64,000 nucleotides of DNA, from positions 37,572,001 through 37,636,000 of the forward strand of contig CM060733.1 in assembly GCA_030704615.1 (NCBI GenBank), given 5' to 3'. Under the pieces are notes generated by a model. It searched no databases. It was not told the DNA's origin and worked only from the letters and a program-made list of their open reading frames with translations. Position numbers and translations under genes: made by a program. This document shows positions 14,640 through 61,596 of this stretch, piece after piece (within the stretch, counting starts at the first letter, position 1; each line of letters begins with the position of its first letter). This DNA is from Takakia lepidozioides (taxonomy: Eukaryota; Plantae; Bryophyta).

Positions 14640-16162
14640 GATGCTAAGGAATTCCTTTCCTGGTATGAGGGGAGAATCAAGATTAATATACCAAGTCCCT
14701 AAAAAGCAAGAATTTCAACAATCTACTGTACGTCTCTACTCATAGAGTTGAAAGGTACCACTTTCTAAGTGGTTGTTTCACACCTCATATTTCTACTTTA
14801 GAACTACAAAAAGAGCGAGTTGCCTCTTGTCATCTACAAACCACCTTCTTAGCAATATTCAGAGTGGATTGAATCACTACGTGGTGACCTAGGAGACCCT
14901 ACTTCTAGGTACAAGTTATAGTGCTTTAATATAGGAGGTCTTGAAGTTTGTGAGCAGTAGCCCAGCCCATCATATGCATTTGTAGTTAGCACAAAGCCGT
15001 TAGCCCATTTGTTGTCATGTGCTTATATCTACAGCCTCCTCCATCGCTCAATCTGAATGTGCACTTGTAGGGTTTAGTTAGGCTCAGTCTCTTTTCAATT
15101 TTGCTGAAGGAGAGTGCAGGTTCTATGGCAGCGAGTGAACGCAGCCCAAAACATTTGAATGACGATGGCACCGGAGGCGATTTGGCAAGAGCACCTGGTT
15201 CAGCAGAGAGTGAAAGTGGAGGAGAAGAGGATTCACTTCCCCAAGAGAATGCGATGGTGGAATATGAACGGTGTCGTGCTATCAGGGTAGCTGAAAACAA
15301 AGCTTGTTTGTTGGATTAGAGCTCCAAGGGCACTGCACTGTAAGTCGAAGCTGTCTCCCTGCTCGAATACTGTTCATGCGATAATTCATTCCCTCCTTCA
15401 TTGCATCGTTCCCTCCTTCCCTGCACTTGCAATGCGATCGCAGCACCTGAGCCGAAAGATGGCCTCCCCTGCGTTGCTTCCACGCCAGACTTACGTCTGT
15501 TTCATGAAAGGTAGTTGAGGTCCCAAGAGCCCCTAGAAGACTGCCATATCAGCAGGATGTAGTGGTTATGGACACTAGTGTAGTGGTTAATATGTACCCT
15601 AATGATTTTTTTTTAAAAAAACGACGTGTCCACATCCCATCTCTGCCATTGGATGGACGTGGACCGTCAGATGCAACCCGGCACTTGGACAACCTCATGT
15701 CTCTCACGCGAGCGTACTAAGTGTGCGTGCTTCGCTTTTTGAGCTTCCTGGGCTTGTGAGGGCGTTTTGTTGTGAGTGACCCGGGCGATTGTGGGAGAGT
15801 AGAGAGAAAGAAAGACCCCGCGTACTGCCCGCTATGTGTGGAACGGCCTAGTGCGAAGGAGTACTCGTTTGAGGGAGAGGAGTCATGTTCACATGGGGGT
15901 GGTGGAGAATGAGTCCAACACCTTGGAGACCAACCCGGGGGAGGATAGTGGAGCGACTCCTAGTGCTGACTACTCAGCAAAGAGCGAGAGCACGGACGAG
16001 GAGGAAGACCAGAGTGCTGAGAAAATTGTCGTTCGCATGACTCCTTCCAAGTGGCCCTTAAGGACATCCACCCCAACCAAGGAGGGTAACAAGCCCGCGG
16101 TGGGATCCCTAAGACCCCTTTTGTCTCTGTCTCTATCTCTCTCCCTCTCTCACCCTTAGTTC

Positions 16163-18190: not shown

Positions 18191-21100
18191 TGTCACCCTT
18201 AGTTCCTCTCAGATTGTGGAAGCAATTGAGCATTTTCATGATGTGTAGGGTTTAGGGTAGGGTTTTGTGTAAAGCAGAGGTAGAGGCAGAACCGAGCAAG
18301 GTTTAGGGTAAATCTAAGTGAGTAAGAGGCTGGGGTGTATGGCGGAGGAATGATCTTTGGAGTGATGAACTGATGGAGAAGGGAGTGTGTGGGGCTGGAC
18401 TGAGAGTGAGGGCGAGGCTGGAGAATGGCTCATGAAATATATATGCTTACAGTAACTGAGATGGTGATTGGTTTATATAACCAAGCCTATTACTACTATG
18501 ATTGGCTTGTGAACTTAAGGCATGATTGGTTGATTGTTTCATTTCAATCCTGATATGCTTTGAGCCTGGTTCCGGAGATTTATCTCCAGACCTGCAATCT
18601 GCTTTTGTGATGAGTTTACAATCTGCATATATGGTGGTAAATGTTATATATCAAACCAAGGTTCTTTCCTAAATGTGAATGACCTGGAAACCTTGTTAGA
18701 AAGATGAATGGCTCACGAGTTGGACTATGTATGGCTTGACCCATGGATTAAATTTCAAAGGGTTAGAACATGTGTTAGGGTTTTAATACTGAATGGATGT
18801 GGGACATTGCTAGGGCACCAGAGCATGACATTTCATGCATTCACGCCATTGGATGCCAAACTTTTTTTGGCACGTTGGGCCAAGGTTTGTATGTGTTCAC
18901 GAACTGCCAACCTTGTTCGTTGCCCGGTTGACCTTATTTTCCATAATTGCTAACTTTGTGGGGTGGAGGGGCTTGTGTTAGGCTGCATCAAAGTGAGCAA
19001 AGGAAGGGGGGACTGAGGCTGTGGCGAATGCTACTGATCCACCTACGACATGGGTGCAACAAGGCTCGAATGGCCCATGGGTGCAATCCAGAGGTGGGCA
19101 AACATGGTTGCAGCAAGGACCACCTACCTCGCAGCAGCCCATGGCCCCTCCACAAACGACAAACATGTGGTCATGGATTCCAAGTGGGTCCAATAGAGGA
19201 CCCCAAGGAGCTTGGGTACAAGGAGGTGCCCAAACTTGGGGCCCTCCATGCAACACTGCTGGTGGGCAGTGGGCAGGCCCCCTTTTAATGGTGCTGCTCC
19301 TCCATTCACCCCCCCTGCTGGTGATGATCGAGATTCCACACAGCAAGGGGATGTGGCGTCGCAGGCTGCAAACAAAAAAAGACAAAAAAGGCTGGCTGCA
19401 AAGGAACATAAAACTGATGCGAAAGCCCGCAAATCTGTTGGGCTGAAGCCGCACAAGGTACGACTAAGCTCTAAGGGGGAAGTAGACCAGGGGTGTGAGG
19501 GAAAGGATTACTGGTAGAGCTCCTTGCGGGGATTCTGCATCAGATATCTTGATCCTAGCATTTTGCTAGCAGACAAGCAGGAACCCAGTGACATGGCCAA
19601 GGTTAAGGAATCCATGGAGGCGGAGTTTGAGTACTACCCTAAACTTGTGAGCATTGACAAGTTCCAAAAAACATGTGGGAGGATTATAAAAGTACACCGC
19701 CAAAAGTTAAAGCTGGTGTGGTTGGCTGGAGGTCCATGCCCTCCGAGTGTAGAGTCCTGCCATTGGGATGCATTGGTGAAGTACTGGGATTCCCCCAAGG
19801 GCAAGAAAGAGAGTGAGAACATGAAGAGAGCACGATCCAATGTTACCAACCCATCGAGGGTTGGAAGAGCAGGGTTGGCTGGACAGGCCCGACGCTTGGT
19901 ATTATGAATATCTGTACCACATTTTAGTATATGTATGTACATATATACACATATATGTGATGGAGTAGGATACCATCTCTGCCCTGTGAGGTGGTTGCAA
20001 ACTGTCACTACAGTCATGTCTTTGTAAACGCCCCACTTGTTTGGATGAATAGGGGCTATTTTTTTTTATTTGTTGTGGCCCTGGTAGAAGAAAGAGAGAG
20101 CACGAAGTCCAAGCATCACTGAGCTGGCACACGCATCAAAGGCGGACAAGGGTTTTCGCTCCCAGTCAATTGGAGGTGCACAGGTAAATGGCGCATGGGT
20201 ATTTTTTTTTTGGTTGCATTCATTTTGTTGGAGCAGTAGTCAGGCCATGCGGGCTGATTATGTCTCTTTCTTTGGCTGTATAGGGAAGGGGCAGTGCGAT
20301 GCAGTCTCGACTGTCATCCCTTGAGGGCAGTGTGCTTGCCTTGGCAGACGTTCAGATCCCGACGATTGAGGGCGAATTGGCCACTATAAAAGCAGAAGTT
20401 GCTAAGGCTTCTGCGGACAATAGCAAAAAACTGGATGCATTGATGGCAATGATGTTGGGAATGTCAGCAACTGCCCCTCCTCCAACTACTATCCCAATAT
20501 GTACTATTATTGAACCTTGCGATTCCGACGCAGGCTTGGGAGGCAAGACTGCTACGGAGAAGGTGGTTTGTGCACCTTCACCGTGCAGGGAGAACCTCTT
20601 GAGGTTGGGGAAAAGCCAAAGTCATCTGCCATTGAGGACCTTGTGGTGACCCAAGTAAAATTGGGGCGCAAGGGAATTTCTGATAAATTGCCACGTAGGA
20701 AGGGAGGTGGAGCTGGCGGGACAACAATATTGGCTGCTGGTGAGGACATCTGCTCCACCGAGAGTGCTGGTAAGGGTGACAGTAGGGGGTTGGCAGATCA
20801 GCATGTGAAGCCAACTTCCCCACAGAAAGAGGTACGCCCTCAAAGACTTTATCTTGGTTCCTATCCTTGGGCTTTCTATTTTTGACTCTGAAAACATTTC
20901 ATGAATGATCTATTTATTGGTGTGTACCATGAATTCTATGCATCAGGTATGGTAAGACGTACTCATGTACTATACCTTGTTGTTTTGTTGGCATATAGAA
21001 GGGGACTAAAGCAGAGGACCCTGCCCCAGCCATCGTGAAGGGAACTGAGAAGAAGTACATGAAAAAATGAGAGCGTGTAACCAGAGCCACTGCTGCCAAA

Positions 21101-28049: not shown

Positions 28050-31000
28050 GAAGACATGTTGAGCAATACGAGCACACCATCTCCGGATGTAAAGTTGTCA
28101 GTGGATAATGGGGTTTCTCGATCCAGTGTTGAAAAGAGGTTTGATGATGCTGGTGTACATCGAAACTGGACAGTTGTTCATCTTCGTGGACCAAAACCTG
28201 AACCTCGTTATTATGTGAGTTCCATACCAACTATTCCAGAAGGTTGTCTAAGGGCATATATTTTGGACGGTCCCTACCTTTTTTATGAGCTTGCACAGGG
28301 GTATTTGTGATTGTTTCATGTGTCGCCTCTGGTTGGTTTGTCGCAGTTGGTAGAACTTCGGCAAGCTCATAAGGTGGTGGGGCCCTGAATGTAGTCAATT
28401 TTGTGTAATGAGGGATGAAGAGGGCTGGTGCAGCATGCTGCGACAGTGGTGGGGCGAAGAATGCTTATTGCTGGCGGTGACACTGCTTCTGGACCTATCA
28501 GTGACGTGCAGGTTCTTTTTCTCTCTTTTGCTGATGGTGGGATCTGTTGTGCCATCCAACCTCTTTGTAGCCATGATGATCTGAGAAGGAATCCATATTA
28601 TGTAAGTATGTGAGAGAAGGTCGATAGTGATATTAAGGTACTCATCTTGCGGTAGCTTGTAAGGACCCTAGGAGCAGAAATGGAGGAGAGAACCATCCGG
28701 GGGCCCAGGCTTTGGTGGTAGGGGTTGGGCACAACTTAGGCTTACTGGGGTAAGGGGACCCGTCTTTGTTAAGGTTGGTTTGTCTTTACTGAGTTCGTCA
28801 AGGAACGATCTTGGCATCAAGTTTATTGCAGTTAGCAGGCTATACTGCAGACTTGGCTCTTCCGACAGCCTACTCTCAAGTCCCCACATTGAGTGCGAAA
28901 ATCCCATGCCTAACGTGATTCACACTGCAGTACAATATTGAATGCAATCTGATATACTCTACCTTGAGATTAGAAGATTAAAGAGCAAGGAAGGTTATAA
29001 ATGCTGCCCTTTCTCCATGAGGAGGCTGCCACTCAGTACTGCCACTATTTCTATCATCACTAGTAGGTGCCACAGACTGGTTTGTCAACACAACCTTAAA
29101 AAATAAAGGCGTCACCCTGAAATGCATCAAAGGCATAGGTACCTGGCGGCCAACTGTGCTGGTGTCAAACCAAGACATGGGGTCAACAGAACAGCTTTTT
29201 GTCAAAAAGGCCTTCATCTGTGCCATAGGTGGGCCTGCTCATCATAGACTAACCCAGGAAAGAACAGACGGCAAGGGCTGCAAGGCAGTGATTAAAAAAC
29301 CCTAAGGCATGGAGGAGAGAACTGAGGTGGTGGAAGGGTGGTGTGGGGCCTTGGGGGTGGGTTTGGCAGATGCTCCACCTTGGCAAGCTGATTTGGTTGG
29401 AGGCTGGTGTGGGACCCTCAGCACCCAGCCAAGGAGGGTTGCCAAAGACAGCAACTGCAGAGCATCTGCCTGCATGCAGAGGCCATAGTCTGGTGAGACC
29501 ACATCTGGCTGCTGTGTTACTTGCTGAGGTCTCCGGTTTGTTACATTGATAACTCTTGTTATGATGTCTGCAGATATCATGGGGAAAAACCGTGCTTCTG
29601 GTTGCTGGACAGATGGACCCTGTGGTTGATAGGGTTCAAGGTGGGCCCAGGACTTTGCTGAAGCTGATTTTAAGGAAATAGGGGTTGAGTGCCATGTTGT
29701 AGTTGCATCACTCCACTTTGTTTGTGTGCACACGGTTCAGCAAAAGTCATGTTTCAAGTTTCAACATTGCAGTATTTGCTACACATAATCATGTCTGGTG
29801 ACCATGTCTTAAATTACTAATGATAGCTTGGGGACTGGCAGTCTGGTCCTTTGATGTGGAGATGGAGTGTTGGAGAAAAGTTGCAGCTAAAGGGGAGATT
29901 CCGGTATGTCTCCTTCTCTGGATGACACTTTGGTAGCAGGTCTGTTACTGTGGTTTTCTCTTTGTTCTATACTGCTCCTGCTTCATGCCCTGGTGTGGTC
30001 CTTGCTGTGTCTTCTTGTGTTCTATGTCGGGGAGTTCATGGTCCAGGTCCAGGTGGAGTGGGTATCCATAGAAGGAGAGAAGTGTACTCATGCACTGTTT
30101 TTCCGTGTTCTAACTCTGCAGTGGGAAAATGAATTGACACCCAAAGCTTTGCATTTAGCTGTTTGAACCGCTTTTTGTATATGTGCATCCCAGTTGCAAG
30201 TGGAGGAAAACTCAACAACAAGATATGCGTAGGAGGAAGCACAGGGATCTCTTCGCTGCCCCATGTCCATTTGAGATCCCTCCTCCCTCCCCACAATCAT
30301 TAAGGCCACCACCGCGCATTTACTAACATTATCTTCCAGTCTCCACAGGTCAAAGTATCGCTTTGCACAATCAATCAACTCCTGAATATTGGATTGGGTA
30401 TCGCCTAGGCCCGCGAAGTCATCCAAAAACATTCAAGCTGCCATGGTGGCATTTACAGACCTTTAACTCAAATCCCTGGCTTTCCACATCTTCAAGTAGC
30501 TGATTGATGAAAACATTGAAGAGCACCGGGGAGAGGGCACAACCTTGAGCTACACCTTGGTCAATGGCTTGAGGGTCAGCCTCGAGATTATGGAAGTTGG
30601 TGAACAGAGGTGCAGGGACTATGTTCTTAATGGTCCTGAAGAGGGTCGCTCTCTTTTGAGAACACCTCGGACATTGTATCAGAGAATGGATATTGTTTTC
30701 AGGCTGCCCGCACATTGGGCATTCACAATCTCCCTTTCCTCTCTGCAGCAGACTCCTGCCCTGAGTTTAAATTTCTGTCTAGTGTGCTGAGGGTAGGTAG
30801 GCCCTTCAGAGGAGAGAGAGAGAAGAAAGAGTCTAGGTGGGCCTGCAGTTTTTGTGTGAGTAAAGGATGTCTATGGGACTGGGTGCAGGCAGCAAGGAGT
30901 GGGCAAAGCGTGACAAGAGCAGGGAGCATTTTGATTATGTTTGGGGGGGAAGATGCCAAGGGGCATAAACTAAGTGACTTGCACATCCTGGACCTGAAGT

Positions 31001-34000
31001 CACTCATGTGGCTGCCTCTACATACGACGTGAATTGGCCTAGCCTTTCTGCTACCCATTGCTCTCAGTTTCATGTGCCAAGGGGGGATGGAATGATCATA
31101 GCTGCTCATTAGGTTGTCTTCAGTTGAAGCTTGTGCTGTCATGGAGATTCTTTCCCTCACATGTGGTTGTGGCTGACTTCAGTTGGGTGGACTATGATGT
31201 AGAGGCCCTGGACCTTCACCACGAGCAAAGCATGCAGCTGCCATGTATGATGATCGTTTTTTACTGATATTTGGGGGAGCCTCCAAGTCCAAGCCTTTAA
31301 GTGATGTCTATGCACTTGATTTTGAAACAGTACGTTTTCCCCTGTGAATGTTGCTCTTTTCTGTGTTGGCAAGATTTTCAACGAAAAGCAAGGAGCATTT
31401 CATCTTCTGCTCAGAACATGGAAGTTTTAGGGGCAGGATGTGATCCCTTTGTGTTGTTGGTTGCAAAATAGGAGGGGTATTAGCTGTGCACTTTTGCATG
31501 AAGTGAGATAAACCTAGGGGACAACATTGACTAACAGGGGGTAGGTGCACAATCTACAGATGGAGTGGTCAAGGTTTGAAAACAAAGGCGTCTCTCCTTC
31601 ACCCAGGGCAGGGCATGCCAGTGTATTGGTTGGTGAAAAGTGGTATATCGCAGGTGGAGAAAATCGTGGTTTCGGTACATCCTTCTCCCTCATGCAAGCA
31701 GTTTGTTTCTTGGATCTTAGTGACTTTGTATTTGATGTAAATTGGCTTTCCATGTTTCATGAGTGATAGATGTTTAAGGACCACATTGGCATTTTGCAGG
31801 AGTGCTTGAAACCTTGGTGCTGGATATTACGAGGTCGACTTGGTCCGTGGTTGTTTTGACACCTCCTAATTCGCTTCTTGCCAACGAGGTCTGCTTAGAC
31901 ATTTGGTGATGCTTATTGCTTTGCATTTAGTAGGGTTTTTGATCTTGACCCCTATCCGTCAAGGACATTGTCGTTTAGTTCGTTGTTGTATCATCCATGC
32001 AAAATAAGGGCGTTGCTGGGACTTATGGAGTATGTACTTTGTGAAGAGTGCAATTGAGGTCATCCCATGTGCATACTGACTATGAAAAATAGAGTGCAGC
32101 AAGTCAAACAAATCCTTGTGTTTCCCTTCATCTTAAGAAAGGGCCACTCATGTCGTGAGGTATATGAAGAGCTTAATTGTGTGGATTGTAGAATAGTCAA
32201 TGCTTGTCTCATGAAGGTAGATGTCTTGAGGTGTCCTTAATATCTGGATCAATTTCAATACTTCTCTCATGTAAGTAGAAAATGAGCAAGATAGGTAGAA
32301 AGACAAAAAGCCTACCTCTTATCTTCTTGTATACATGGCAGGGTTTGAGCATGGTGCTGGTTCAGCGCAAGGAGAGAGCATTCTTAGTGGCATTCGGGGG
32401 ACGTGGCCGTGAACTTTCCAATGAGGTGCTTGCCTGTACTACCTTGCTTTCTCTGCAGTTGTTGCCAAAACATTTTCTCTTCGCATTGATTTGATCAAAC
32501 AGCTTGGGTGAGGTGATTTATTCTTGAATATCCAATTGTGAATGCTAGTACTGGTGCAAGCCTTTTGTCACTCATCCCTCTCTCTCTCTCTCTCTCTTGG
32601 ATGCTAGAGGATATCTGGAAAACCCGGATTAATTCTTTTTATGAAGGTAAGTCTTACTACCAACGTCAGCCCCTGACAGAGTAGGTTCTGTTCCTTTTTT
32701 CCCGCTCAAACTGGGCGCGGGGTCAATGGCCACAAGGCTACGGCCAACAACGTCTTATGAGTACAATCTCTTGGATGCTCTGGCTTCAGTGAGCATGGAC
32801 ACTAGTGTTTGAAGCATGTAGGATATCCTTCTTCCTCCCGCTCCCCTGGCCACTGTTACTCTGCCTCTCTCTCTCTTGCCGACATTGCATTGACTGGGTA
32901 AATAACTTTGTGGATGACATCGTGCAGTAAAATGCTGCATAGCTTGATCCTTCATCTGTATCCGTGATACACATCATGTCCTTGATTCCACCAAGTGAAG
33001 GAGGATGAGAAGAAGGCAAGCTAAATAAACTAAAATGTAGGCCATTTACAATGTGTATCCTCGTCGCTGTTGACTGTGTAGGTGCAAGTTTTGTACATAA
33101 CGCCGTCAGAGCGTTCGTCACCCACTTGTCAATTGGGGGGCAGTCTTGGAGATGCAGAGGCAAGTGATCTGCGGCAAAGTGCAGAAGCAGCATACTCAAC
33201 ACTCGTTGGAGCGGGGATACCTTGTGCATGTGTCAATGTGGCTAAAACCCATTTGATGCCGGTGGTAGAGCACCGCTCTATGCCACGCACTTCACCTTCT
33301 CACTCCCCCGGAAATGAGCATCTGGTGGACGCATCAGCATCCGGCCTAGTTCCTTTACGGAAGCCGTTCGCGGTTCCGCAAGACGTGGCCAAAGAGCAAA
33401 AGATTCATAAACAAGAACCTGAAGGGACTACCTTACAAGGTTTGGCAGAAAGCCCTTGGCAAGATGATACACCTCCGCAGCTCTGTAAGTTGGGGTCGCT
33501 CTCGGAGACGTAAGTATCATCTGTGCACGTGAAAGGTGAATGACTCTTGAAACCCCTGTCCAGGGGGGTGACTACAAGTGCTGGAGGTTTCCCAGTAGGG
33601 GGCCACTGCTCCAGACTCCCGTCATAACAATCTCTCTACACTCTCATGAACCTTGAATTCAAACCCAATTGGTGTAGTCCTAAGACAGTCAAAGAAAGCA
33701 AAGCAAGGTGAGGAAGGGCTTGCTAATACAGGAGGCATCTTCTTACTGCGCAGGTTTTACCAGGCCACTCTAAGTTGAACTTCAGGCTAGTGTCTAACAT
33801 GGGAATGGCCTTTCAGGTACTCCTGGAGAACCACTTCACATCCCTCCACTAAACTGTGCCATTTAAAGTACAATGGTAATTGTATCCACATTGGCTTCCA
33901 GTATCACAGTGTCTTCTAGCACCATGAATCAACATTTGTTTTTGCAAGGGCAACTTGAGAAGCAATCTAGGTTATCCTTGCCAGTGACTACAGTCGTTTC

Positions 34001-36918
34001 TTGGTTTGATCAGCAAATTACCCTCCACGTTTTCCTGCTGGTTTTGGACATCCACAGCCTAAGCCTGAAGTCCGTCATCCACACTATCATTGATTTTTTT
34101 TTATGACAAAGGAAGAAGGCACAAGTAGTTTATCACTTTCTTTCCCTTGGGCAATTCATCCTAGGGTACCGTAGTATGTTGTCCAAACATACTTGTCAAG
34201 CCTAAAGCCTTCTTGACCCTCATGTATTTCTCTACTTCGTACCCCCACCCAGTGCCTCTTAACCTCCCCGCTCTCCTGAGCTGTTCTTCAGCCTGAGTAG
34301 AGTGAGATGATGCTCTCTTGTGGGAGAGCCGCTTCACTAACTAGAGAATAAAGGAGTATTTGAAGAGCAACATTTTAGTGGAGCAAATCCTCGTAGAAAT
34401 GCCGAAGGAGTTCACACCTTGAAGTTCATCTGCGACTTACTTTTGAGCCTTGATCTCTCAAATTTGTTGCATGTCCTCATGAACATCTCAGTCCCTTCAT
34501 TAGTATCGAGAGCGTTGCCACCCAGTGTATTGACAAACATCAGTACAAATGAGTGACCCTTCAGAAGCAATGAGGTAATTGTAGGTATATTACCAACTAA
34601 TGGATGATGTTGTTACAGCCCATGAGATAGAGAAAGGTCTTGGATGCTTCTTGTGGTTTCCTGTGTTTGAGCACTAAGATAAGCATTGGGGTTTTTTTGA
34701 AATGCATAGAAATTCAGAACCTACAGATATTTGACATTGCTAGCAGTCCTCACACAATGTAGAAGGGAGTGGATGGGTGCATGGATGCTGTGTCAAGGAT
34801 GCCTTTGGGAATGGCAGCTTGAACAGAGCATGAAAATGAGGGTTGGTGGCCACATGTGATCAGGCCAATGGAAGTCATTCTCAAGATGTGGAGAACACGT
34901 CGGTCAATTTGGAATCAGCATCAGGGCCAGCCTCCCCAGTGGTGACTATGACGAGGCAGATAACACAGCATGGAGGGTCTTCCAGGAGAAAAGACTCCTC
35001 TGACTCTAACCTCTCATCAGTGTTGGAGAGCCCAGGATGGTTAGAGTATACAAACCTACAAACAGCTGGTGATGATGTGAGCACCCAAACTTGGAGATCT
35101 GTGGCCAGGGACAGTTATGACATGCAGTCCACAGTTGCAGGAATCAGTGGAAGCAATGCAGACAACTCTGAAGTCGAGCTTATGACACAGCTGCATGATG
35201 CCGATACAGTGGACAAGCGCATGCAGGTGGTTGCAAAGCTGAGGAAAAATTTCGAAAGAAAATTAGCAGCTGCAGTTCACAAGAATGAAATTACAGAAGG
35301 ACAGCTAGCAGCTGTCCTAAGAAGTAAAGAAGAGGCAGAAAAGAATCTGTCATCAGTTCTGAAGAGCCAGCAAAAGGCAGAGGCTAGACTTGAAGCTGCA
35401 CTGAAGGATCAGAAGGATGTCAAGGATAGGGTGCTGGCTGCAGAGCAGGCACAAGAGGACTCTAATAATCTTTGCAATGTGGTGCACTCTGAGAACCTGC
35501 GTTTGGAACATGACCTTGCCTTCCTTAAGGCTGTCCTGGAAGATACTCAGAGGGTGAGGCTCAAGAGTCTGGCTATGTGGGTGCTGCAGTAAACATATAT
35601 ATGTCCCAAATATGTTGAGGAATACCTCAGTTTTTTTATACATGTAACCTACAGGACATGAGGGAGCCCAAAGAAAAGCCTATCATGAAGGGCCTGATCT
35701 ACCTTAGATCCAGTCTTTTATAGAAGTCTATTGATTTCAGCTTCTGGGATTGTTCATGCAGGAATTGCATTCTACCCGAGAGGTTCTTGCAGGAGAGCGT
35801 TCACGAGCCTTTCAACTTCAGGTAAGAGGGTTTTGACGTTTTAGGCTGTACATTGTCTGGAAAGGGAATTGGGATCTCTCTCTCTCTCTCTCTCTCTCGT
35901 CAAAGCGCAAACAACGTCTTATGAGTACAATCTCTCGTCAAAGCTATGGCAAACAACGTCTTATGAGTACATTCTGGCATATAAGTTCCCTGAACTTGTT
36001 CCAGTCCAAGGACGACCTGAAGGGCCTCCTTTTGGCACTAGAATGAAAGTTAAACTAGTCTGCCTTTGAACAATAAGCAGATGCACAGAGGAAAGGGAGA
36101 TTGACAATACCTGATGTGCAGGTGGCCTGAAGACAATATCGTTTTTCTGATACATTGTCCAGGGTATTCTCATCAGAGAGTGACCCTTTTCAGGATCATC
36201 AAGAACATAGTCCCTGTGCCTCTGTTCACCAACTTTCAAAATTTCAAGGCTGAGCCTAAACCCTAGCCCTGTTGGGGTCTAACTGCCAGGCAGATCAGAC
36301 ATAGCAGATTGATGCTTGTGTGAAGGTCTATCTTGAGGAAAGTAAGTCCTAATGTATGTCAAGGTTAGTTTATATCAAGTGAAGTCCCACTAGCACCTCA
36401 TCAGGTAGTGTCTGTTCCCTCTTGTTTCACCCAAACTGGGTGTGGGTCTATGGCCACGTTTACAGCAAACGGCTATAGCAGACAACGTTTTATGAGTACA
36501 GTCTCTCAGTCTGTCTGCCAAGTTCCGCCCAAACTGGGTACGGGGTCTATGGCTACAAGGGTACAGCAAACAACCTCTCATTAGTACATTGTGTGTGTGT
36601 CAACTCTTTCTCCCTGGGTCGGTAGAGTTACTAGTTCCCTTAGGGTTGGTACTCTGCTGGGCCATGGCTGGCAAGGTACAGCAGCTAATATTGGCAGGGG
36701 GATCTCTATTTGTGTTGTTTATATTTCTCAGTTAACGGAAATTGATGCTAAGACCTTGGGCACTTGATCTCTACTGACTTCTAAGTGTATGTTACATGTG
36801 GCCGGGGAGGCAGGTGGAGGTGTTTGAACTGAAGCAGAAAATTCCTCCTCTGGAGTCCTCTCACATGGTATCTCCTACATTTTCTTCTCATGCAGGACAG
36901 CAAGCTGCAACTACTTGA
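28050..36918 (+). CDS. Kelch-repeat protein with C-terminal coiled coil (ACBP4/5-related, At5g18590-like; no ACB domain seen); start codon uncertain
   Basis: Approximate exons: ..28214, 28434-28511 (HAATVVGRRMLIAGGD), 29370-29492, 29574-29640, 29842-29903, 30889-31028 (RSGQSVTRAGSILIMFGGED), 31203-31329, 31560-31674, 31800-31888, 32342-32425, 33082-, 34864-35552 (NLRLEHDLAFLKAVLEDTQ), 35762-35821 (ELHSTREVLAGERSRAFQLQ), 36814-36918 (VEVFELKQK..stop). Confidence 0.88.
30083..30808 (-). mobile_element. Family A LINE copy with scrambled internal order, in a kelch-gene intron
   Basis: On the minus strand the Zn-finger region (30808-30566) comes first, then the RT region IDQGVAQGCALSP..DDFAG (30565-30095), then the ATGAGTACA end. 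(GA)n-rich flanks on both sides. Confidence 0.85.
32606..32766 (+). mobile_element. Family A LINE 3' end, 161 bp, young
   Basis: Near-identical to the 3' end of the 57-kb copy. Perfect TSD TCTCTTGGATGCT (32593-32605, 32767-32779) at the end of a (TC)n tract. Confidence 0.95.
35893..36590 (+). mobile_element. Stack of at least four family A LINE 3' ends behind a (TC)n tract, in the last kelch-gene intron
   Basis: Termini end at 35930, 35971, ~36500 and ~36589. A diverged Zn-finger-region copy spans ~35985-36500. Confidence 0.88.
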
Positions 36919-37859
36919 CAGTGTGACTAAAGGCCAATACAGTCAGATGCTTTGTTAGCAACCACAGATAGATGGGAGGATGGACTTCGTATTTTATCAA
37001 AAAATGTTGATATTATTATTGGAACACTAAGTACCCACCATTTGGGTTGACATTTGCTGTGTGTGAGCCCAGTACAGGCTCAGACATTCATACTCTCTCC
37101 TTCATAAGTTCACTCTTGGATGATCATATATTCTTGGGCCTATGGTTGAATAACCTAAATTGCACAGGAGGGGTGAAACGTTTTTCTGAGTGAAGCCTTT
37201 TTGCTTCATAGAATGATGAACATGATTGCCACAACATCACTTATAATTAGTTATGGTTTGAGTCCGTTGGCAGGCAGTAACTGCTAGCGGCCCTGCCGCT
37301 GATAGTCGACCTCAGTGCATATAGCAGAACATAAGTCTAACTTCCGTCAGCTAAGCTCTTAGAACATGAGTGGGCATTGACCAGTCCGAATTCCTAGTTA
37401 TCTCCCACTCTGGGCCTTTTTCACCCTCAAAACACAATTCCTTGGGTTGCCTTTTACAAGCCTGATCCGTGCCAGGTGTGCACAGTCCCACAGTTGGAGT
37501 CTGGACCAGTGTTGTGCAGACTGACCACAGGAAAGTCAGGCTCCCGCTTGGTGACAAGCGACTCTCTGGAAATTCTGGAGCTAATTACCAAAATATTGAC
37601 GCTTTCAAATTGTAATCCCCCCACTTGGATCCACACCAGTTCTATTGGAGATTGTGAGAAGTGGATGTCAGCCTGCAGGAAGGGAGGGCTTTGTGAGCTG
37701 TGAAGGTGACAAACTGCTATTCTTTGAAACTTTGATGTTCACCCCACCGAGATGGCGGAGAGCGCTGGCAGACAGCGGACGGCCAGAGGCAGAGGTGCCA
37801 GCCACTCCAACTTTACCCATGGCGGGTCAAAACCAGTGTTGGGCGGTTATTTATATTTT

Positions 37860-38350
37860 TTGCTTTTGAAACAGTTCTGCAAAGACTATGGGATGCAAGT
37901 CAATCTTAGCAAGACCAAGATCATGGTCTTCAATGGCCAGGCTGATCGTAGATTCATCTTCAACCAGCAGGAAATTGAGATTGTCAAATCATACCGGTAC
38001 CTAGGTCTGGTTATCCACTCCCCCAAGTTTCACTTTGCAGCCACTGCCTTGGACAGATTGACTAAAGGTAAGGCGGCCTCCGTCCGCCTTCACGCCAAAT
38101 GCAAGCAAATACATGTGCGGCATCCCCCGACCAAAAAGTGTCTGTTTGACACCGTCGTCAGCCCTGCTACCATCTATGGTTGTGAGTTCTGGGCACCTGG
38201 TGTCCCTGTCTCCTGGTGGGAAAAGATTTTGGAACCATTACAGTCATCTTTTCTCCAAGCAATGCTTGGCGCCAGGAGCACAACTCCCTCTCAGATCCTA
38301 GGTGCAGAGTTCGCATGTGTACCATTGCAATCCGAGGCACAGTTCAGGCT
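37860..38350 (+). mobile_element. Fragment of a second RTE/RTEX-like LINE family (RT thumb region)
   Basis: FCKDYGMQVNLSKTKIMVF..VKSYRYLG..LFDTVVSPATIYGCEFW..STTPSQILGAEF; distinct from family A. Confidence 0.85.
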
Positions 38351-38662
38351 TACAATCTGTGATGCTTGCTATTCATGCAATTACATGGGGGTTGAAATCT
38401 CAAAATTGACAAGAGAAAATGTGCCTCCAAATGAAGTACTTTTTTTTTCTACAATTTTTTTAAAAGCCAATGGTGGATGTGTGTATGTAATGCTCACACA
38501 CCAGAAGGTGAAGTGTTTTTTCCAAAATTGCTAATTTTCTGCCAAAAATGGCCTTTGGAGTGCAATCTGTTTTGGGCTTGTTTACCTGCCACGTCAGCGG
38601 TCAACAGCCCTTTTCAGGCCCCAAAACGTAAATGAAAGATCTAAGATATTTTTTGTAAGTAG

Positions 38663-38664
<2 letters not shown>

Positions 38665-38703
<39 letters not shown>
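38665..38703. repeat. Poly(T) tract of ~39 nt
   Basis: Seen directly in the sequence. Confidence 0.9.
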
Positions 38704-38704
<1 letters not shown>

Positions 38705-40038
38705 TTTTTTGCATCATACTCGAGACAAATCCCTTGTCATTAAAGCTTCAGGAGTGGGCCCCATCAGATTAGATCTGCAAAAATTAGGTCGAACTCCAAA
38801 TTCAAAGTGACCCGATTTAGGTCGCTTGGGAACTTAAGGGTTAAGAGTGAAATGTTTTTTTGGCCGGGTACCCATAAATCCGGTTATCATTTTCGCTATA
38901 ATTGAGGGTTATACAACCGGTTATCTATATTTATTTATTTATTAAAAAAGATATGAAATTATAGCTGAAACTTCTATCAATCATAAATACCTGCATTAGT
39001 ACAATAGAGCTGGTCTGCAGATATATTTTAGATATATGACACATGCATCTGGAATTACTAAATGAATTGGGCTCATCAATGGGGATTTAAAAAAATACAG
39101 TGTCCTATCATAATGTTTCAATGTGCTTCAATATATGAAGCCCTGGCAAGCTCATTAGCCAAGGACTTACACCACAGAACCGCCACTCATAACCTCATAA
39201 CCTTAGGTTATTAGGCCCAATATATATATTCGTAACCGTCCACTTAAAAAACACTCAACCGGTTGTCTACATCAATTTTAAAATTTCGACCTCTGCCAGT
39301 TACTATTGGGACCGGTTACTTGTATGCCTACACTCTGCCGGTTCCTAATGGGACCGGTTATTTCAATTTTCATTTCTTGTGGTTATATACATATAAGCGG
39401 ATAGATAACCAATTGTTATTAGAGACAAGAATAAATAACTGCCCAACATTGGTCAAGACGGGATGCTGGTGGGCCTCCTCTGCCAAAGCCCTAGGCGCCA
39501 AGGTGGTGCCCTCTTCCTCCATACCAAGGGACATATTTCTCTCACCCTGGCTATATTTCTCTTTTTTCACTATCAGTGCACACAAACACAACACTACATA
39601 AGGTAGTGCTACCATGATCGTGGTTACCAGCACTTGCAAATACCTTTTAGTCTAAGGTTGTCTTTTGGTGTGCCTTAGCTGAATGAGGCCAAATCCATGA
39701 TAGTTGATGATCGAGGCAAATGGACGTATATAAGGCCAAAGAAAAACTTAGGTCAACAATATTTGCAAATGCTCGGAACCACGATAGTTGACATTCAGGC
39801 ATAACCTCATCAAAGGGAGTCTGATTCAATAGCCGCACAGGGAAAGGAGCATGACTATCAGGAACGTCACCCCACAACACATTCCTCCCTTTGGCAGTCG
39901 AGATCTTCGGTTGTTTGCATCATCAATTCTATCTTGCGTCAGGCATAGGTTGCCGGCACTTTCTGACCCATCCTCTTTCCTATTGTCTTGTCTGACCTTC
40001 TTTAGGCACTAGGTGATACTAGCACAGTTTGATTTCTT

Positions 40039-49500: not shown

Positions 49501-51636
49501 CTTGATCTAGAGCCGAAAGGAGAAAAAGGAGAGGGACATAGAGAGGCTGCACAGTCTCAAGTGATTCTATGGTTCCTGAACCTTTTGCTTGCAGAGTTTG
49601 TGGTCAAAATTTCTGGTTCAGATTCTGTATTTCTATGTCCTTCACAAGAAAAAGGTAAACAACGAAGAGAGAACAAGGAAGAAATAGAGACAGTGAGCCT
49701 CATCCTGCAGAGTTGTTAAAAGGTGAGAAAAATCTTTTGGTCATGTCCAGTACAAAAGGTTGTACATAGTCAATTTTCTCTGTTCAGATGCTTCCTGTCT
49801 CTAAGATTGGGTTGTTCTGTATACCTTGCAGGACACAGCAGGCCAGGAACGGTTTCATGCACTCGGCCCCATTTATTATCGTGATGCTGATGGTTGGTTA
49901 TCTCATCTTTTGGCTTTCTCTTTCCTCACGTGAATAACATCTGTTACTTGCTAAAGGGGATTCTTGTACACTCTGAAAGCCCCCAGTTGGCTGCAAGAGG
50001 GTTTTTATTCTATGAGGATTATGCTCTTAGGGTAGGTCATAGCTCATAGCCTACATCCCAAGGTAATAGTCAACCCTAAGTAAGGGAAGAAGCCCCAGAA
50101 GGACGGGGTCTGAGCAGAAAAGCCAAGACAGGCCCGAGTGTTCAGAGGAGTAGAACAGATATAATCATGCCAGTAAGGGACAAATCTCCCTCTCACTCTC
50201 TCTCACAGCAAGCTTTCAGTGATAGCAGCGGCTTCCATTTCACTCTCATCTCTACCTGCCATACTTCTCCCCCATACCCCCCCCGCATTTCTGCTGCGTC
50301 CAATATTCGTCCCCACAGATATGTGTGAGTGTATATGAGCTTCCACTTCTAGTCCTTCTTTGGAACACGTATATTTATGATTTCCTTGCTCTGCTACCTT
50401 GGTTAGTTTCTGATTTGATCCCTGCTGTCTGTCCTATCAGCATATCCCTGTCCTATGGGGATCCTGTGCAAACTCATGCCTGTTGCGATTTTTCCTTTTG
50501 CCTTGTGGAAATGTTACAGCGGCACTGTTGGTGTACGATTTACTGGACAAAGATAGCTTCAACCGAGTAAAAAGTTGGGTGAAAGAGCTGCGAAAGATGG
50601 CACCCAAAAATATAGTCTTGGCTATTGCAGGGAATAAGAGTGATATGGATAAGTTGCAACAGGCCAACCTTGTGGAGACTGAAAGGTTTGTCTGTGGCTT
50701 TTCTTTTGTTCTTTGGATTGCGTTTCTTTGGTTGCTGAATGGATTCTACAGTTTTACCTTGCCACACAGCAGATTGATGCTTGTGTGGAGGGCTTTCTAG
50801 AGGACATCTGGAAACCCGAACAAATTCTCTATATCCCACTATTGCAGTAAGCCCCTCACAAAGCTAGTGTCTGTTCCCTTTTGCTCCACCCAATACGGGT
50901 GTAGGGTCTATGGCCACAAAGGCTACAGCAACCAATGCTCTAAACTAGACTCGTGAGTGACAATCATCAAGGCTAGGGAAAGCCTTCTGATCGGGACACC
51001 TCTCCCTATGACAGTCTCACAATTCCATCAGGTCAGGGAGCATATGATTGTAATGGAGGAATTACCTGTGGATTGTGCTTTTATTTGTCTTTCCATCGGC
51101 TGCAAGTTGAGGGGTGGCAGGTAGTGTTCTGCAGATATGCAGACTCCATAGGAGCAAATCATTTTGTGACATCAGCAAAGCTCAATATTGGGATAGAGGA
51201 CGCCTTCCTTAATATTGCTCAGCGTAAGTTTCTTATTATTGTTGTATATCCAGTTCAGGATGGATGCAAACTATTCTTCCCAACAGCTTCTTTTCTGCAT
51301 AGAATGTTTTCTCCTCTTCTTTACAGTCGTCTTTCGAATGTAAGCCTGGAGTTTCTTCAACACTTCACAAATATGTAGAAAGATTCGTAATTGCCCTCTT
51401 CTTTGAGTGATATGGGTAGTAGATTGTGTTCAATTCCTGGTCTTGCCTTCTCCATGCTCTAAAGAAAGGAATGAATGAGCAACACAGGCATCTCTGTTGT
51501 TTGGACAGGTGTGCTAGAGCAAAGAAAGACTGGTGGGTCCAACACTGTCACACCCAGTTTTCAAAGAAAAGGCATGGTCATATCAGACGTACAACCATCT
51601 TCAGGGTCTGCTGCGCAGTCAAAGTGCTGCTCTTGA
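46574..51636 (+). CDS. RAB21: Rab21 small GTPase
   Basis: Exons 46574-46619, 47873-48009, 49832-49892, 50520-50685, 51135-51223, 51509-51636. KIVLLGDGRVGKTSLVLRYV..TIQASYL..LAIWDTAGQERFHALGPIYYRD (Rab21 signature), GNKSD, TSAK, C-terminal KCCS prenylation motif. Confidence 0.92.
50761..50940 (+). mobile_element. Diverged family A LINE 3' fragment in RAB21 intron 4
   Basis: cacacagcagattgatgcttgtgtg..ctagaggacatctggaa..ggtctatggccacaaaggctacagcaa matches the family A 3' end. Confidence 0.85.
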
Positions 51637-55900: not shown

Positions 55901-58900
55901 TCTGAGAGACAGAGGCTAATATCGAATGCCCTTCCACATATAAAGCTTGGAGAAATTGTATATATGAGGAATGAGAATCGTTATCACATGTATCCAGTTT
56001 AGTTAGCAACTCCAAAGCTGTGGAACAAGTATGTCATCTCCTTCCTTTTCTTTACCTTCCTAGATGCTTTCTGCAAAAGCAAAGACATCGTCATCCCTGT
56101 AACATTCAACCTTCCTTGCTCCACAAAGGGACAGGGTGTTGGTATAGAAGCCTGGGAAGGACAGGTTGGAAGCACTTATCTCACAGCACCTCATGATTGC
56201 AAGAAGATTGCAAGGAAAATACTTGGACAGGATGGTCGGCGGAAAGAGTTTAGTTTTATTTGTTCCCTGCGTTTAAGATGTCAACTTGCTCTAGAGGATA
56301 CCGCGCCAAACCCAAGATCACCCACCAGGGTAAAAATATCATATGCAAATTTTGCAGGCGATTGCCTGACAGCCAACAAAAGATTTTGGCAGCAGGTCAG
56401 ACTTAAATTAAGGCATGCTCTAACAGTTACCACCATATATACTATTCCTACAGCCTGCTACGAATTGGCATATACGGCAGGGAGTCTACAAAAGGAAGAC
56501 GCACAATCAGAGACATAACACATATATAGAATCTGTGTGTGCTCAATCACCATGGGTAGTTAGGAATGCTAGCGGGAGGGGGTAACAAAAGGTTGGTTGA
56601 GAAGGGGAGAAGCATGATCCTTCAGTTTCCACTTGTAGAAATGAACTGCATTCTACAATGCAAACCACCCAAACTGGGAACAGCATCCTCAGCAGAGAAG
56701 GTGGCAGTCCATAAATCCTCTCCTCGTTGGCTCGCAGATGAACCAATACCTATGACAAATCAGCTTGTTGCAGGCCAGGAGTAAAGCAATATTGTCTCTG
56801 CTGGAGATGGTCTACCAATTAGGGTGGAGCTTATGCAAGAGGCACAAGAGACACACATCTCCAAGTTGTCAATGTCCGAGACATATGTACAACCTCAAAT
56901 TCTGGAATTGCGCTTTGATAAACCAACCAATGGAAGACAAATAGCTCACTGTAATGGAAGGCAAATAGCTCACTGTAATGTTGTCTCAGGCTAACCATGG
57001 TGTGAAGTGATCTTAAGTGTGCCATACACTTAATATGTGGAGAGGTATACTCTCCAGATTGCAGGAACGAAACCTTGTTAAATGCAGTGCACCCTCTCTT
57101 ACTATTGTGAAGCTGACAAGCCTGGGAAGCCAAGCCAATAGAACCTAGTACACTAAGTGCCCTACTAGCCCACTAAGGAAGTGCACCTGGAAGTGAATCT
57201 ATTACAACATATGAGAAAAGAATAGAATGCATGATGCAGAATTCTTCATGATGACACTTCCACTCCTGCAAATAAATATGTATTATGGGTAGTGTTCCAA
57301 GATAGATTGTACTCATAAGACGTTGTTTGCCGTAGCCTTGTGGCCATTGACCCCGCGCCCAGTTTGAGCGGGAACAAAAGGGGCAGAACCTACCTCTGTC
57401 AGGGGCTGACGTTGGTAGTAAGACTTACCTTGATATATAGAATTAATCCGAGTTTTCCAGATATCCTCTAGAAATCCCTTCACACAAGCATCAATCTGCT
57501 GTGTGTGATTTGCCCAAAAACTAGGCCTCAGGAGGGCCTGGGCTTTCGGCTCAGCCTCGAGACTTTCAAAGTTGGTAAACAGGGGTACAGGCACAATTCC
57601 CTTGATAGATTTGAAGAGAGCGTCTCTTTGGTGAGAGAACCCTGGACAGTGTATCAGAAAATGAATACTGTCTTCAGATTGCCCACACAACGGGCAATTG
57701 CACTCTCCCTTTCCTCTCTGCTTCTGTTTGCTGTTCAAAGGTAGGCTTCCTGCCCTGAGTTTAAATTTCAGTCTAGTGCCGAGAGTGGGTAGACCCTTGA
57801 GGTCATCCAAGATGTCCTCCCCCATGTCACTGACTGGAAACAAGTTCAGGGAAGTTTTCTGCCTAACTTCATTTTCATCAGACAATCTCATGGCAACAGA
57901 CATGGCTTCGGACACTACAGCCTCTAAGTCAGATTTATCCAGCAGGGTCAAGACTTGCGGATCCAGGTCCAGGTCCTTGAGAATCTCTTCTACTCTCTTC
58001 TGCCAGGACTTAGCCTGTTTGACAGGGCGGTCCTGTTTCCAAGATATAGAGTCGATTAACTTAGGATATCTGGTGTTGGGCATATGTTGCAGCTGACCCC
58101 ACCATCTGACCTTGAATTCATCTCGTCGGGAGCTTAAGGAGTGTTCCAAGATAGAGATTAACGCATTCCTAACAAACCTCAGTGCGGCCGGGCATGATTG
58201 GTTTCCCAGCCAGTAACTCCGCCAGAATGCAGCCTGTACTCCAAAGGTCAACAGCCACACCATACTCCGTGGCGCCCAGTAGCAACTCTGGAGGCCGGTA
58301 CCACAGTGTGACCACGCGACTCGTAAGTGGTTGTTTCTGGTCTGGATTGAAAAAGGTAGCCAACCCAAAATCTGCAATCTTCAGAATGCCTCCATTATCC
58401 AACAGCAGGTTGGAGCCTTTGATATCCCGATGGAGTACACCCTGTCGATGACAATGATCTAAACCTCGTAGCAACTGCTGCAAATAGCACTTCACCTGTC
58501 CATCCCAAATACTTCCCAACTTGAATGATGCTCTCTGCCCGCTGATTAAATTGGTCACACGGCAACCTAACCCCTATCATAGAAACCGAAAACACCTGGC
58601 CTACCAGATGATCGTCAAAAGAAATATTTACATGGCAATCAACCTGACCCTTAAGTCAGTTTGGCATTGTGCAAATGCAGAACAATGCCCATGGCACAAT
58701 GACACCTGAAACAGAATAAATGGTGATGATGGTGGCAGTACCAAACAGACCATGAACATAATGCACAGCCACACAGCAAAACCATCCCAGCAACTGAAAC
58801 AACATTGCACAGTAACACGTCAGGTGCAGGACTGGAACTACAATCTGAGTCCTTGTCTGTGAATGGGATGCCAAGTACGCCACTCAAATACGGAACACCC

Positions 58901-61596
58901 TGATCACAGTGCTACTCTTTTGATCTTCCAGGGGACAAAGGAGAAGCTACAATAACCCCTCTTCTTTCCATAATACCTATATCTTGGGTTACTACTCAAG
59001 GTAAAATTAATGTGAACAGATCATGGGTAATGACAATGAAGACACCATGTAGAAGGCATTCACTTTTGTACTCGACACATGCACCAGACATGTTGCACAC
59101 ATAAGCAAGAGTGCCACACTCTAGTTTTTGTAGGGCGCTCAGGCTTGAAATCCATTTCTAAGGGCATCTTCCAAATAGGACCACACACAACCGGTAGCTG
59201 TTGGCCACAACCTCAATTTCACAGATGGGTTGTGGACACCAATGTTGGGGGACTGTTACCAAACACTGAAAGGCTTTCCACTGACCAGCTCCAAAGCAAC
59301 GGTCAACCTCTCTTATCAGCAGCTAGCTACACCAGCAACTGAGCAAACATTGATCACAGCAGCAGCTGACAAAGCACTGCAGATAAAAATATGTATCAGA
59401 TTCTACATGCTACCGAAAAGCCATCGAGCATCGCTCCTTCTGCAAGAAGGTTGAATAATGCTGCCTTATGCAGAGGAGGGTAGCCTTGCTCTGCTACGGC
59501 CAGAAAAAATCTAATTCATGAGCCTCCACCCATGAGCCTGTGAGCGACTGAGCACAACACTGTGAGTCTATGAGCCTGTGCTCACAATTTTGGGTGAATC
59601 AGGGTGAATCATGAGCCTGAGCTCACGGATTTCACGCTCACTTGCTCATGGGAATCCTGCTCATGGATTAATTTCTCTCCTACAGCTAGTGGTCATATAA
59701 CCACATACAAACTGACCCTTACCTGCACCAGAGCTGTCAAAGGGGAAACGGACATGGCTTTATGACAGTCAAGTCAATAAAGGCACTGTCGGTGCCATTG
59801 TTTCTGATCTCCCCTTCAACAGGGTTACATGTCAGAGAAACAATACCAAATCTGTCAGAAGTGAGTATGACCTTTACATGGAGCATACGCTCTTACAACT
59901 CCCACTTCTTGTGGGACTGAACCTCTTTTAAGTTGAGGATCTCTGCCACTGATCTCTCCACCACAGGTTATGAAGGCTTCAGAAGGGCTCCGGGATTGGA
60001 TCTCTTCACTAGCATAAGGTTCAACATTGTTTCTGTGGAAAAATCTGCATATCTCCTGAAAGGAGAAGATCAAAAGGCTTATTAGTTCAAGTCCTTCTTC
60101 CCAAGGAGCTTCAACTTGTTACCTCTGTAATTATCCCCATCAATTCTGGTCAGTAAACAAACTACTGGGTCTCTGACCATGGCTCCAGTCAGCAAAGTGC
60201 AATACTCTTTGCAAGCAAACACTACCACACAGCAGTTAAACTAAGGTATGAGAACCTAGGATGAATAGATGGCAATTCTAGTCCTACCCCAAAAACGACA
60301 CAATCTTTACACGAAGTTTCAACTTTCCTGCTCATACAATGGCTGTTAATCCCAATAGCGAAGACAATATCACGGAAAGATGCCAAAAGACACTCCCCAT
60401 ACTGTCAACCGTCTACGATGAGACCATTAAAAGGATCTGTCACTTAAAGCGGCATCCCTTTTTTTTCTAAGAAGGGAGGGAGGACATGGGCAGGAGGTGA
60501 CTAACCTGAGCTTCAGTGAACATAATACCCGGACAGGCAGCAAGCCCAGCAAGGTCATGTTCCATGTATTCAAATACGAGGTAGAGACTGCAAGACATTC
60601 GTGATGTCACCAACCCCTCCAATTTCACCACATTTGGATGATCAAGGCGGCGAAGCACTTGAATCTCCCGAGCCATAAACCGCACACTTTCAGGTTCCAA
60701 ATTATCAAACCGCACCTTCTTCAGTGCAACAATTTTCCCTGTCTCAAGATCTCGAGCCTTGTACACATTGCTGTATGTCCCCTGTCCAATCTACAAACAT
60801 CCACTCTATTATTGTAAAGTCACAGCAGCATTCTTTCACCATTCCAAAAATGCTGCCCTTCCTGTTCTCTCTCTCTCCCTCCCTCTTGCTACAGCAAAGA
60901 AAGTCTTATGGGTACATTCTCTCTCCCTCTTATTCCGCCCAGACTGGGCTTGGGGTCTATGGCCACAAGGCTGCAGCAAACACTGTCTTATATGAGTATC
61001 TCTCTTCTTTGCTCAAGAACAAGACTTGCCATAAAGTTTGCCATCAAGTCACCACACAAATCTTTAGACCCCTAACATGCATTGGACCTCACACTTCAGT
61101 GCTCTCTCACATTGGACAGTTCAGGATTTTTCCTTAACAGCTGCAAACCACGAAGTTTCATTTCCAAGCACCAACAGAGCTAGCTTGAACTTACCTTATC
61201 GAGCTTCTCAAATGAGGCAGCATGTCGAGGAATCCAACCCTTGATAGCCTCCCCAGCAACGGCTGACAGCCACCCAGGCCATCCAGCAGCAACTTGTTCT
61301 CCCTCCAAGTGCTTTGAGGGATTACTCAATCTAGGATTCGGCTCTGCTTGACTCAAAATCTTCTCTCTTCTCCTTTCCACTCCTTCATCCAATATTGCTG
61401 TTGAGCTAATTGTGCCATTATGTTTGCTTCTGACTTTGATTCGTTCTTTGTCTTTTTCTGGAACAGTAACAATTGCTTCGGCAGTTTCAACTTTAGCACT
61501 TGCGCTGGAGCGCCTACCTGCTGACCGGGTTACGCTCTTCTCTTTAGGGCTTTCAGAGTCATCCTGTAACCTCTGCTTGACGCACGCACAGCCCAT
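52974..61596 (-). CDS. CDKC-related (CDK-like, At1g54610/IBS1-type) Ser/Thr protein kinase
   Basis: MGC N-terminus; EQVAAGWPGWLSAVAGEAIKGW; IGQGTYSNVYKA; PESVRFMAREI; HRDIKGSN; DFGLA; TLWYRPPE; YPPSKEFDAK; HSGPL..HERQIQQA. Exons include 61596-61195, 60790-60506, 58495-58178, 55744-55517, ~55012-54912, ~54688-54564, ~54362-53711, ~53255-52974. Confidence 0.94.
57307..58139 (-). mobile_element. Young 5'-truncated family A LINE, 833 bp, in kinase intron 3
   Basis: Uninterrupted frame to ..KATANNVL* (TGA 57315-57313). Perfect 16-bp TSD AGTGTTCCAAGATAGA (57291-57306, 58140-58155). Highly similar to 17330-18190. Confidence 0.96.
59501..59679. mobile_element. Degenerate MITE-like element
   Basis: Imperfect TIRs (agaaaaaatctaattcatgagc / gctcatggattaatttctct), internal TGAGC/GCTCA repeats, flanks ctacggc / ctacagc. 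Confidence 0.55.
60888..60998 (+). mobile_element. Two stacked, diverged family A 3' ends next to TC tracts in kinase intron 1
   Basis: gctacagcaaa..gtcttatgggtaca, then tctctctccctc, then gcccagactgggc..ggccacaaggct..gtcttatatgagta, then tctctc. Confidence 0.8.

Follow-up and report, generated by a model that had tools for sequence, protein, structure and literature searches.

The 64-kb window analyzed here (64,000 nt of contig CM060733.1 of the bryophyte Takakia lepidozioides, positions 37,572,001 to 37,636,000 of the forward strand; coordinates below are those of the window) contains a family of long interspersed nuclear elements (LINEs) that end without a tail and are found preferentially at TC-rich sites. 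One of these elements, copy A, occupies an intron of a CDK-like kinase gene, which is encoded on the (-) strand by exons at 60467-60766 and 58169-58558 (Pkinase). The exon at 58169-58558 (-) matches positions 94-200 of the Pkinase profile and ends in ...PGRTE with a GT donor at 58177/58176, and copy A sits in the intron 22 nt past this donor, in sense orientation. Copy A (57307-58139, (-)) consists of the last 833 nt of a retrotransposon open reading frame (ORF) and its 3' end, with the C-terminal 275 codons of pol intact: the frame stays open for 275 codons to ...ANNVL, is closed by a TGA stop at 57313-57315, and is followed only by GTACAA, the last 6 nt of the element. It is flanked by a perfect 16-bp target-site duplication (16/16), AGTGTTCCAAGATAGA at 57291-57306 and 58140-58155. 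On the element strand the 3' copy of the duplication (57291-57306, (-)) reads TCTATCTTGGAACACT, and the 5' copy (58140-58155, (-)) is preceded by ...AATC, so that the nick site reads TC|TCT. The target was AATC|TCTATC, with TCTATC on either side of the element and no additional TC, and neither poly(A) nor a tandem tail lies between GTACAA and the duplication. Copy A is one dead-on-arrival (5'-truncated) LINE insertion. Its frame (57313-58377, (-)) runs by chance through the duplication and the start of the intron into another frame of the kinase exon; the result is a spurious ORF of 354 aa at 57313-58377 (-), which a gene caller could take for a fusion.

The terminal 25-mer of copy A recurs, with no more than one mismatch, at 18166-18190, 32742-32766, 35906-35930 and 35948-35972, whereas none would be expected by chance in a 64-kb window. 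The window thus holds five young 3' ends, belonging to copies of 24, 28, 161, 833 and 2028 nt with one common 3' end, and no poly(A) or tandem tail is present at any of the five. Copy B (16163-18190, (+)), the longest, begins within the reverse transcriptase (RT; RVT_1, E = 3e-15) and is decayed; its duplications at 16148-16162 and 18191-18205 read T(C/G)TCACCCTTAGTTC and match at 14 of 15 positions. Copy C (32606-32766, (+)) preserves ~160 nt from the 3' terminus of the element and was inserted at the 3' edge of a (CT)10 tract, with duplications of TCTCTTGGATGCT (13/13) at 32593-32605, directly after (CT)10, and at 32767-32779. Copy D (35907-35930, (+)), reduced to the final 24 nt, was likewise inserted at the 3' edge of a tract, (TC)12; its duplications of TCTCTCGTCAAAGC (14/14) stand at 35893-35906, directly after the tract, and at 35931-35944. 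Directly behind D follows a mini-copy, D2 (35945-35972, (+)), which contains the last 28 nt and ends in ACAT, followed by TCTGG. D2 has no duplication of its own, and D with its duplication and D2 form a 42-bp near-tandem repeat (Tandem Repeats Finder); for this reason D2 is perhaps not an independent event but a local copying of D together with the target-site duplication behind it, and it was not counted as an independent insertion. The duplications of copies A (57291-57306) and C (32767-32779) have TCTTGGA in common, and D2 is followed by TCTGG at 35973-35978. This likeness may mean that the preferred site extends past TCT, or it may be due to chance.

The non-LTR-type RT, the variable 5' truncation, the 13-16 bp duplications and the lack of terminal repeats are those of apurinic/apyrimidinic endonuclease (APE)-type LINEs, and to judge from these features the element is a LINE, that is, a retrotransposon without long terminal repeats (non-LTR). 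Target-primed reverse transcription, with duplications of 13-16 bp, truncation down to 24 nt, no tail and a fixed last base, is evident from the architecture of the copies.

The preference for TC was quantified on a junction sample of 11 3' ends at eight loci in this one window. TCT starts at 2.0% (0.020) of strand-specific window positions and TCTCT at 0.22% (0.0022), and TCT is found immediately 3' of six of the 11 ends (p = 3e-8; by locus 5/8, p = 2e-7). At least five of six bases 3' of the end follow the TC alternation in seven of the 11 cases (p = 4e-11). Viewed from the tracts, the window has seven perfect ones of (TC)6 or more, and four of them bear a copy at their 3' side (p = 6e-10); the sense strand of the element is the TC strand in every TC-associated case. 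In addition, at all four sites with clean duplications (A-D) the 5' duplication copy follows TC and opens with TCT, indicating that the target read TC|TCT before insertion (4/4). The TC bias of insertions is real. Since the site of copy A is a bare TCTCT, a microsatellite is not required, and the bias is a site preference rather than a strict repeat specificity; a (TC)n tract is an array of many overlapping TC|TCT sites, which gathers copies at its 3' side in one orientation.

The same junctions bear on two other explanations. The TC bases could be part of the element, a (TC)n tail that replaces poly(A), in which case insertion would be near random and the adjoining tracts would be old tails. 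Such a tail would account for the TC found between copies in the stacked arrays at 35.9-36.6 and 60.9 kb, and within the tracts no line can be drawn between tail and duplication. Nevertheless, TCT... is also present in the 5' duplication copy of A, B, C and D, so these target bases predate the insertion; at copy A, TCTATC stands on either side with no surplus TC; and the long tracts are not in the element but 5' of the duplication. TC as the tail of the element was rejected since the 5' duplication copies contain it, and we consider this explanation very unlikely. Alternatively, there could be no targeting at the nucleotide level, the copies having been retained in, or having landed in, open or pyrimidine-rich intronic DNA that is rich in TC tracts. 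Plant introns are pyrimidine-rich and copy A is intronic, but a regional bias would not yield junctions that are base-precise (TC|TCT at 4/4, TCT after 6/11) and strand-specific, which makes this possibility extremely improbable.

Self-BLAST and tblastn with two protein pieces identified six older fragments of related subfamilies in the window. A copy at 35983-36500 (+), with ~70-80% identity to A, ends in GAGTACAG followed by TCTCTC, and stacked behind it is a 3'-end fragment at 36522-36590 (+) that ends in TAGTACAT (36589) before TGTGTG. Two further old 3'-end fragments (29 nt and ~65 nt) are stacked at 60889-60998 (+) behind a (TC)6 tract, with the junctions GGGTACAT|TCTCTC (60917) and GAGTAT|CTCTCT (60998); this stack lies upstream of the kinase exon 60467-60766, on the opposite strand. 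In both stacks, at 35.9-36.6 and 60.9 kb, TC is present between successive copies. A rearranged copy at 30082-30809 (-) lies between a (TC)6 tract and TTCTCTCC, with the junction GAGTACAC|TTCTCTCC at 30082. It combines a piece of the C-terminal domain (aa 141-200), a piece of the RT (aa 16-166) and the last ~12 nt of the element, an arrangement that looks like template jumps within a single insertion event. The sixth fragment, at 50763-50945 (+), has a decayed 3' end and no TC tract.

These results agree in large part with a sequence-only reading of the window, which had described an ORF that stops 6 nt before an invariant, tail-less end, target-site duplications at four copies and fragments adjoining TC tracts at 30.1, 36.5 and 60.9 kb. 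The end, TGA followed by GTACAA, recurs at 18190, 32766, 35930 and 35972, and the duplications match at 16/16 (A), 14/15 (B), 13/13 (C) and 14/14 (D) positions. The plant host that this reading assumed is borne out by PLS-type pentatricopeptide repeat (PPR) genes and a CACTA transposase in the window. The enrichment of TC that it anticipated is borne out within the window (TCT after 6/11 ends against a background of 0.020, p = 3e-8). Its estimate of about ten copies is close to the five young ends and six older fragments found, with the reservation that D2 is perhaps not independent. The proposal that the family primes at TC microsatellites holds as a strong preference for TC sites and has to be relaxed as regards the microsatellite, which copy A, at a bare TCTCT, did without.

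Although Pfam detected nothing significant in the 275-aa C-terminal domain, a sub-threshold match to zf-RVT, the only one, covers a Cx2Cx7Hx4C knuckle, and the zf-RVT match exceeds the cut-off in a relative, P0157. The knuckle lies C-terminal of the RT and is invariant across the alignment. HMMER searches of 1.84 billion representatives returned 157 relatives of the C-terminal domain, many of them within proteins that combine APE and RT. The best is 50% identical, which indicates that neither the copies of the Takakia genome nor close relatives of them are present in the protein collections. An Ectocarpus protein (P0171) shares 48% identity with the RT piece, P0164 shares 46% and P0029 (1480 aa) 42%; a Coccomyxa protein within the related P0186 cluster has 35% identity to the same piece. 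Full-length relatives of 1330-1490 aa consist of an N-terminal extension, an AP endonuclease, the RT and the knuckle domain, with the AP endonuclease N-terminal to the RT in P0029, P0153, P0154 and P0164. Moreover, an R-x-V-N/Y-G block followed by 4-9 residues and a stop is common to the plant family (window region compared, 57316-57400 (-)), the Ectocarpus protein P0171, P0180, P0164, P0151, P0013 and P0012, metagenome proteins among them, and is lacking in the GC-rich alga-like relatives (the P0029 group). Since distant relatives stop 4-9 codons past this block, the layout in which the ORF extends to the end of the element is a trait of the lineage and not an accident of copy A. Other searches added little: the 20-nt element end had no exact match in metagenome contigs, a megablast of the element against phage records gave none either, ESM Atlas searches returned only generic RT or zf-RVT clusters, and 13 loci examined out of 41 from an alignment-based search for related loci, the best-scoring included, belonged to other LINE clades with different C-terminal tails.

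RTE elements, in the description by Malik and Eickbush, reportedly encode a compact APE and RT protein of ~1000 aa in which no Cys-His motif follows the RT. RTE-clade LINEs of plants end in (TTG)n or (TTGATG)n, and RTEX elements of green algae finish with simple repeats, for instance (CA)n or (CAA)n (PMC3472496). The sequence-only reading had called the family RTE/RTEX-like, an assignment we could not uphold: the invariant knuckle, the zf-RVT match, relatives of 1330-1490 aa and ends in ...TTATGAGTACAA without a repeat do not fit RTE, and the five young ends lack the simple-repeat tail of algal RTEX. Instead, the predicted domain order fits an L1/Tx1-like layout (APE, RT and a C-terminal zf-RVT-type Cys-His motif), with RT and knuckle present in the window and the whole layout present in relatives. 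A PDB search with P0029, in a database that covers only these two LINE types, scored L1 (human L1 ORF2p) at 99 bits versus 91 bits for R2, and a bird LINE protein scored 58 bits in the PDB sequence search; L1 and R2 are not separated for this lineage by these scores. A poly(A) tail is present in 224 of 233 L1 families of flowering plants, and five of 15 algal L1 families are without any repeat while some have other repeats (PMC3472496). The Takakia family does not have the poly(A) of L1.

We think it probable that the family is an abundant land-plant LINE, with an AP-type endonuclease, an RT and a C-terminal Cys-His knuckle, that inserts without a tail at TC|TCT by UCU-paired priming. The bottom strand is nicked where the top strand reads TC|TCT, giving duplications that begin with TCT. 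In the UCU-paired mechanism, the endonuclease would recognize 5'-AGA^GA-3' of the bottom strand preferentially, and the 3' end released there, ...AGA-3', would pair with UCU located behind ...GUACAA in a read-through RNA. As each copy is trailed by a duplication that starts with TCT, read-through RNA bearing UCU would be the rule. Pairing with UCU would set the first copied base, resulting in an invariant end without a tail, and each insertion re-creates TCT behind itself, which allows the stacking seen at 35.9-36.6 and 60.9 kb. The UC-ending RNA of the sequence-only reading is plausible.

The main competitor dispenses with pairing: the endonuclease alone would pick TC|TCT, the RNA would end in ...GUACAA, and the RT would start unpaired on the terminal nucleotide, as in R2-type and other 'stringent' LINEs, which do so by binding their 3' end. 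Consistent with selection by the endonuclease, TC, which can have no priming role upstream of the nick, is present there at all four clean sites, including that of copy A outside any microsatellite; copies of 24-29 nt still have precise ends, and the terminal block is common to the subfamilies. However, three of the four upstream TC dinucleotides lie within TC tracts, leaving copy A as the only informative case, and neither a significant RNA structure nor an excess of 3' conservation backs stringent recognition of the end. We regard this explanation as possible though doubtful.

Several observations weigh against UCU-paired insertion at TC|TCT by an element of the proposed composition. The element-encoded end ...ACAA is unable to pair with ...AGA-3'. 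The junction sample is small, and stacked copies in it are not independent. None of the copies in the window is full-length or reaches the endonuclease region. Among the older fragments, that at 36522-36590, before (TG)n, is the sole non-TC case with a readable end, and that at 50763-50945 has no TC. Finally, the 93% pairing and single compensatory pair of a candidate 3' hairpin (CNCCC-AAACU-GGGNG) were matched by 106 of 500 shuffles, and the hairpin was rejected as evidence; the fold of the 3' end is not significant (z = -0.5); and conservation of the last 70 nt, at 85% versus 75-84% in the coding part, is only slightly in excess.

The head-to-tail LINE stacks in Takakia introns would be explained by a very abundant LINE of land plants homing to TCTCT, which would also offer a natural system for studying how an AP-type endonuclease and the 3' end of an RNA jointly fix an insertion site. 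TC/GA tracts are frequent in plant 5' untranslated regions (UTRs) and introns; the TC bias thus brings insertions near splice sites, as with copy A at 22 nt from a donor. For annotation, copies of 24-30 nt beside TC repeats are easily overlooked.

The sequence-only reading stated that three of four host genes were hit. One such case, the CDK-like kinase, was verified. Pieces of a CACTA-type transposase (Transposase_21, DUF4218, DUF4216) at 10518-13488 (-) are ~2.7 kb from copy B, which may lie in a transposon rather than in a host gene, and no Pfam matches were obtained around copies C and D. Copy B is itself interrupted at about 16743-17250 by a ~510-bp fragment of a PLS-type PPR gene (PPR_2, E = 4e-31) on the opposite strand, which replaces a short stretch of LINE sequence; the fragment is antisense, which speaks against a simple switch of template to an mRNA. 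A tandem array at 3404-4531 (375-bp period, 3.1 copies, 93% match) has a unit that resembles PPR repeats. Another LINE-like ORF, at 37752-38534 (+), is 30% identical to the RT piece of copy B (tblastn) and has no Pfam match. A (T)45 run, perhaps unconnected with it, is located ~130 nt past this ORF on the same strand (38666-38710); a plant LINE with a poly(U) tail is a predicted but unreported type (PMC3472496).

To our knowledge, site-biased LINEs are found almost exclusively in animals and protists. Kibi, a close functional parallel, is said to lack poly(A) in the 2004 account by Kojima and Fujiwara. KibiDr1/2, KibiFr1 and KibiTn1 are (TC)n-specific APE-type LINEs of teleosts, from the Tx1 group of the L1 clade (PMC3812793; Kojima and Fujiwara 2004 as cited in PMC4640811), and TC-repeat targeting is credited to fish Kibi alone (PMC3812793). 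The Takakia family resembles Kibi in being a predicted APE-type LINE found in TC repeats and lacking poly(A), with TC-flanked copies and a Cys-His knuckle after the RT (L1/Tx1 layout). Unlike fish Kibi, it resides in a land plant and is satisfied with a bare TCTCT, which makes it site-biased rather than strictly repeat-specific, and the nearest relatives found are algal-type proteins and an Ectocarpus protein, not fish proteins. With microsatellite- or site-specific LINEs in general (Kibi, Koshi, Waldo, Mino, Dong) it shares the use of one simple repeat in one orientation, in its case as a preference only. Its host group is a new one for site-biased LINEs, here of predicted APE type. Reported target-specific LINEs belong to the early-branched, Tx1 and R1 groups (PMC3812793, PMC4640811). 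Tentatively, and with a good deal of doubt, the family could represent a lineage of land plants and of green and brown algae outside these groups, in which the ORF overlaps the 3' priming site and read-through UCU pairing together with AGA^GA nicking homes the element to TC. If so, no LINE that homes to microsatellites would have been described in plants before it, and the family would act on intron structure as a landing pad that renews itself.

Within the green lineage, the L1-clade elements Zepp and ZeppL of green algae use their own existing copies as insertion sites and so form arrays of 3' ends (PMC8226300); Zepp bears poly(A) (PMC3472496). The Takakia family, too, belongs to the green lineage, is heavily truncated at the 5' side and stacks head to tail, mostly as 3' ends, and a Coccomyxa protein falls in a related cluster. 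This cluster, P0186, need not be Zepp itself. Whereas Zepp has poly(A), targets its own copies and forms one cluster per chromosome, the Takakia family is found at a short TC motif scattered through genes. LINEs of flowering plants are either L1s, which end in poly(A), or RTEs, which end in (TTG)n (PMC3472496). Like plant RTE (for example RTE-1_STu) and algal RTEX, the family has no poly(A), its 3' UTR is very short and its ORF comes near the end; it differs from both in having no repeat tail, a C-terminal knuckle and relatives of ~1330-1490 aa with an N-terminal extension. The 'stringent' L1s LINE1-1_ZM and L1-1_CR (PMC3472496) provide another parallel, since they too have a 3' terminal sequence that is fixed across subfamilies, which implies specific recognition of the 3' end instead of poly(A). 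The hairpin of LINE1-1_ZM is supported by compensatory changes (PMC3472496), while that of the Takakia family is statistically unsupported. Searches of the open-access literature, repeat databases (Repbase and Dfam) aside, turned up no TC-targeting LINE in a land plant and, as microsatellite-targeting elements, only Mutator-like elements (MULEs). These plant DNA transposons, the SaTar MULEs (PMC5907723) and MuTAnT (PMC4486113), also pile up at microsatellites in un-nested linear arrays, but they are Mutator-like elements that move by cut and paste, whereas the Takakia element is a retrotransposon that uses target-primed reverse transcription.

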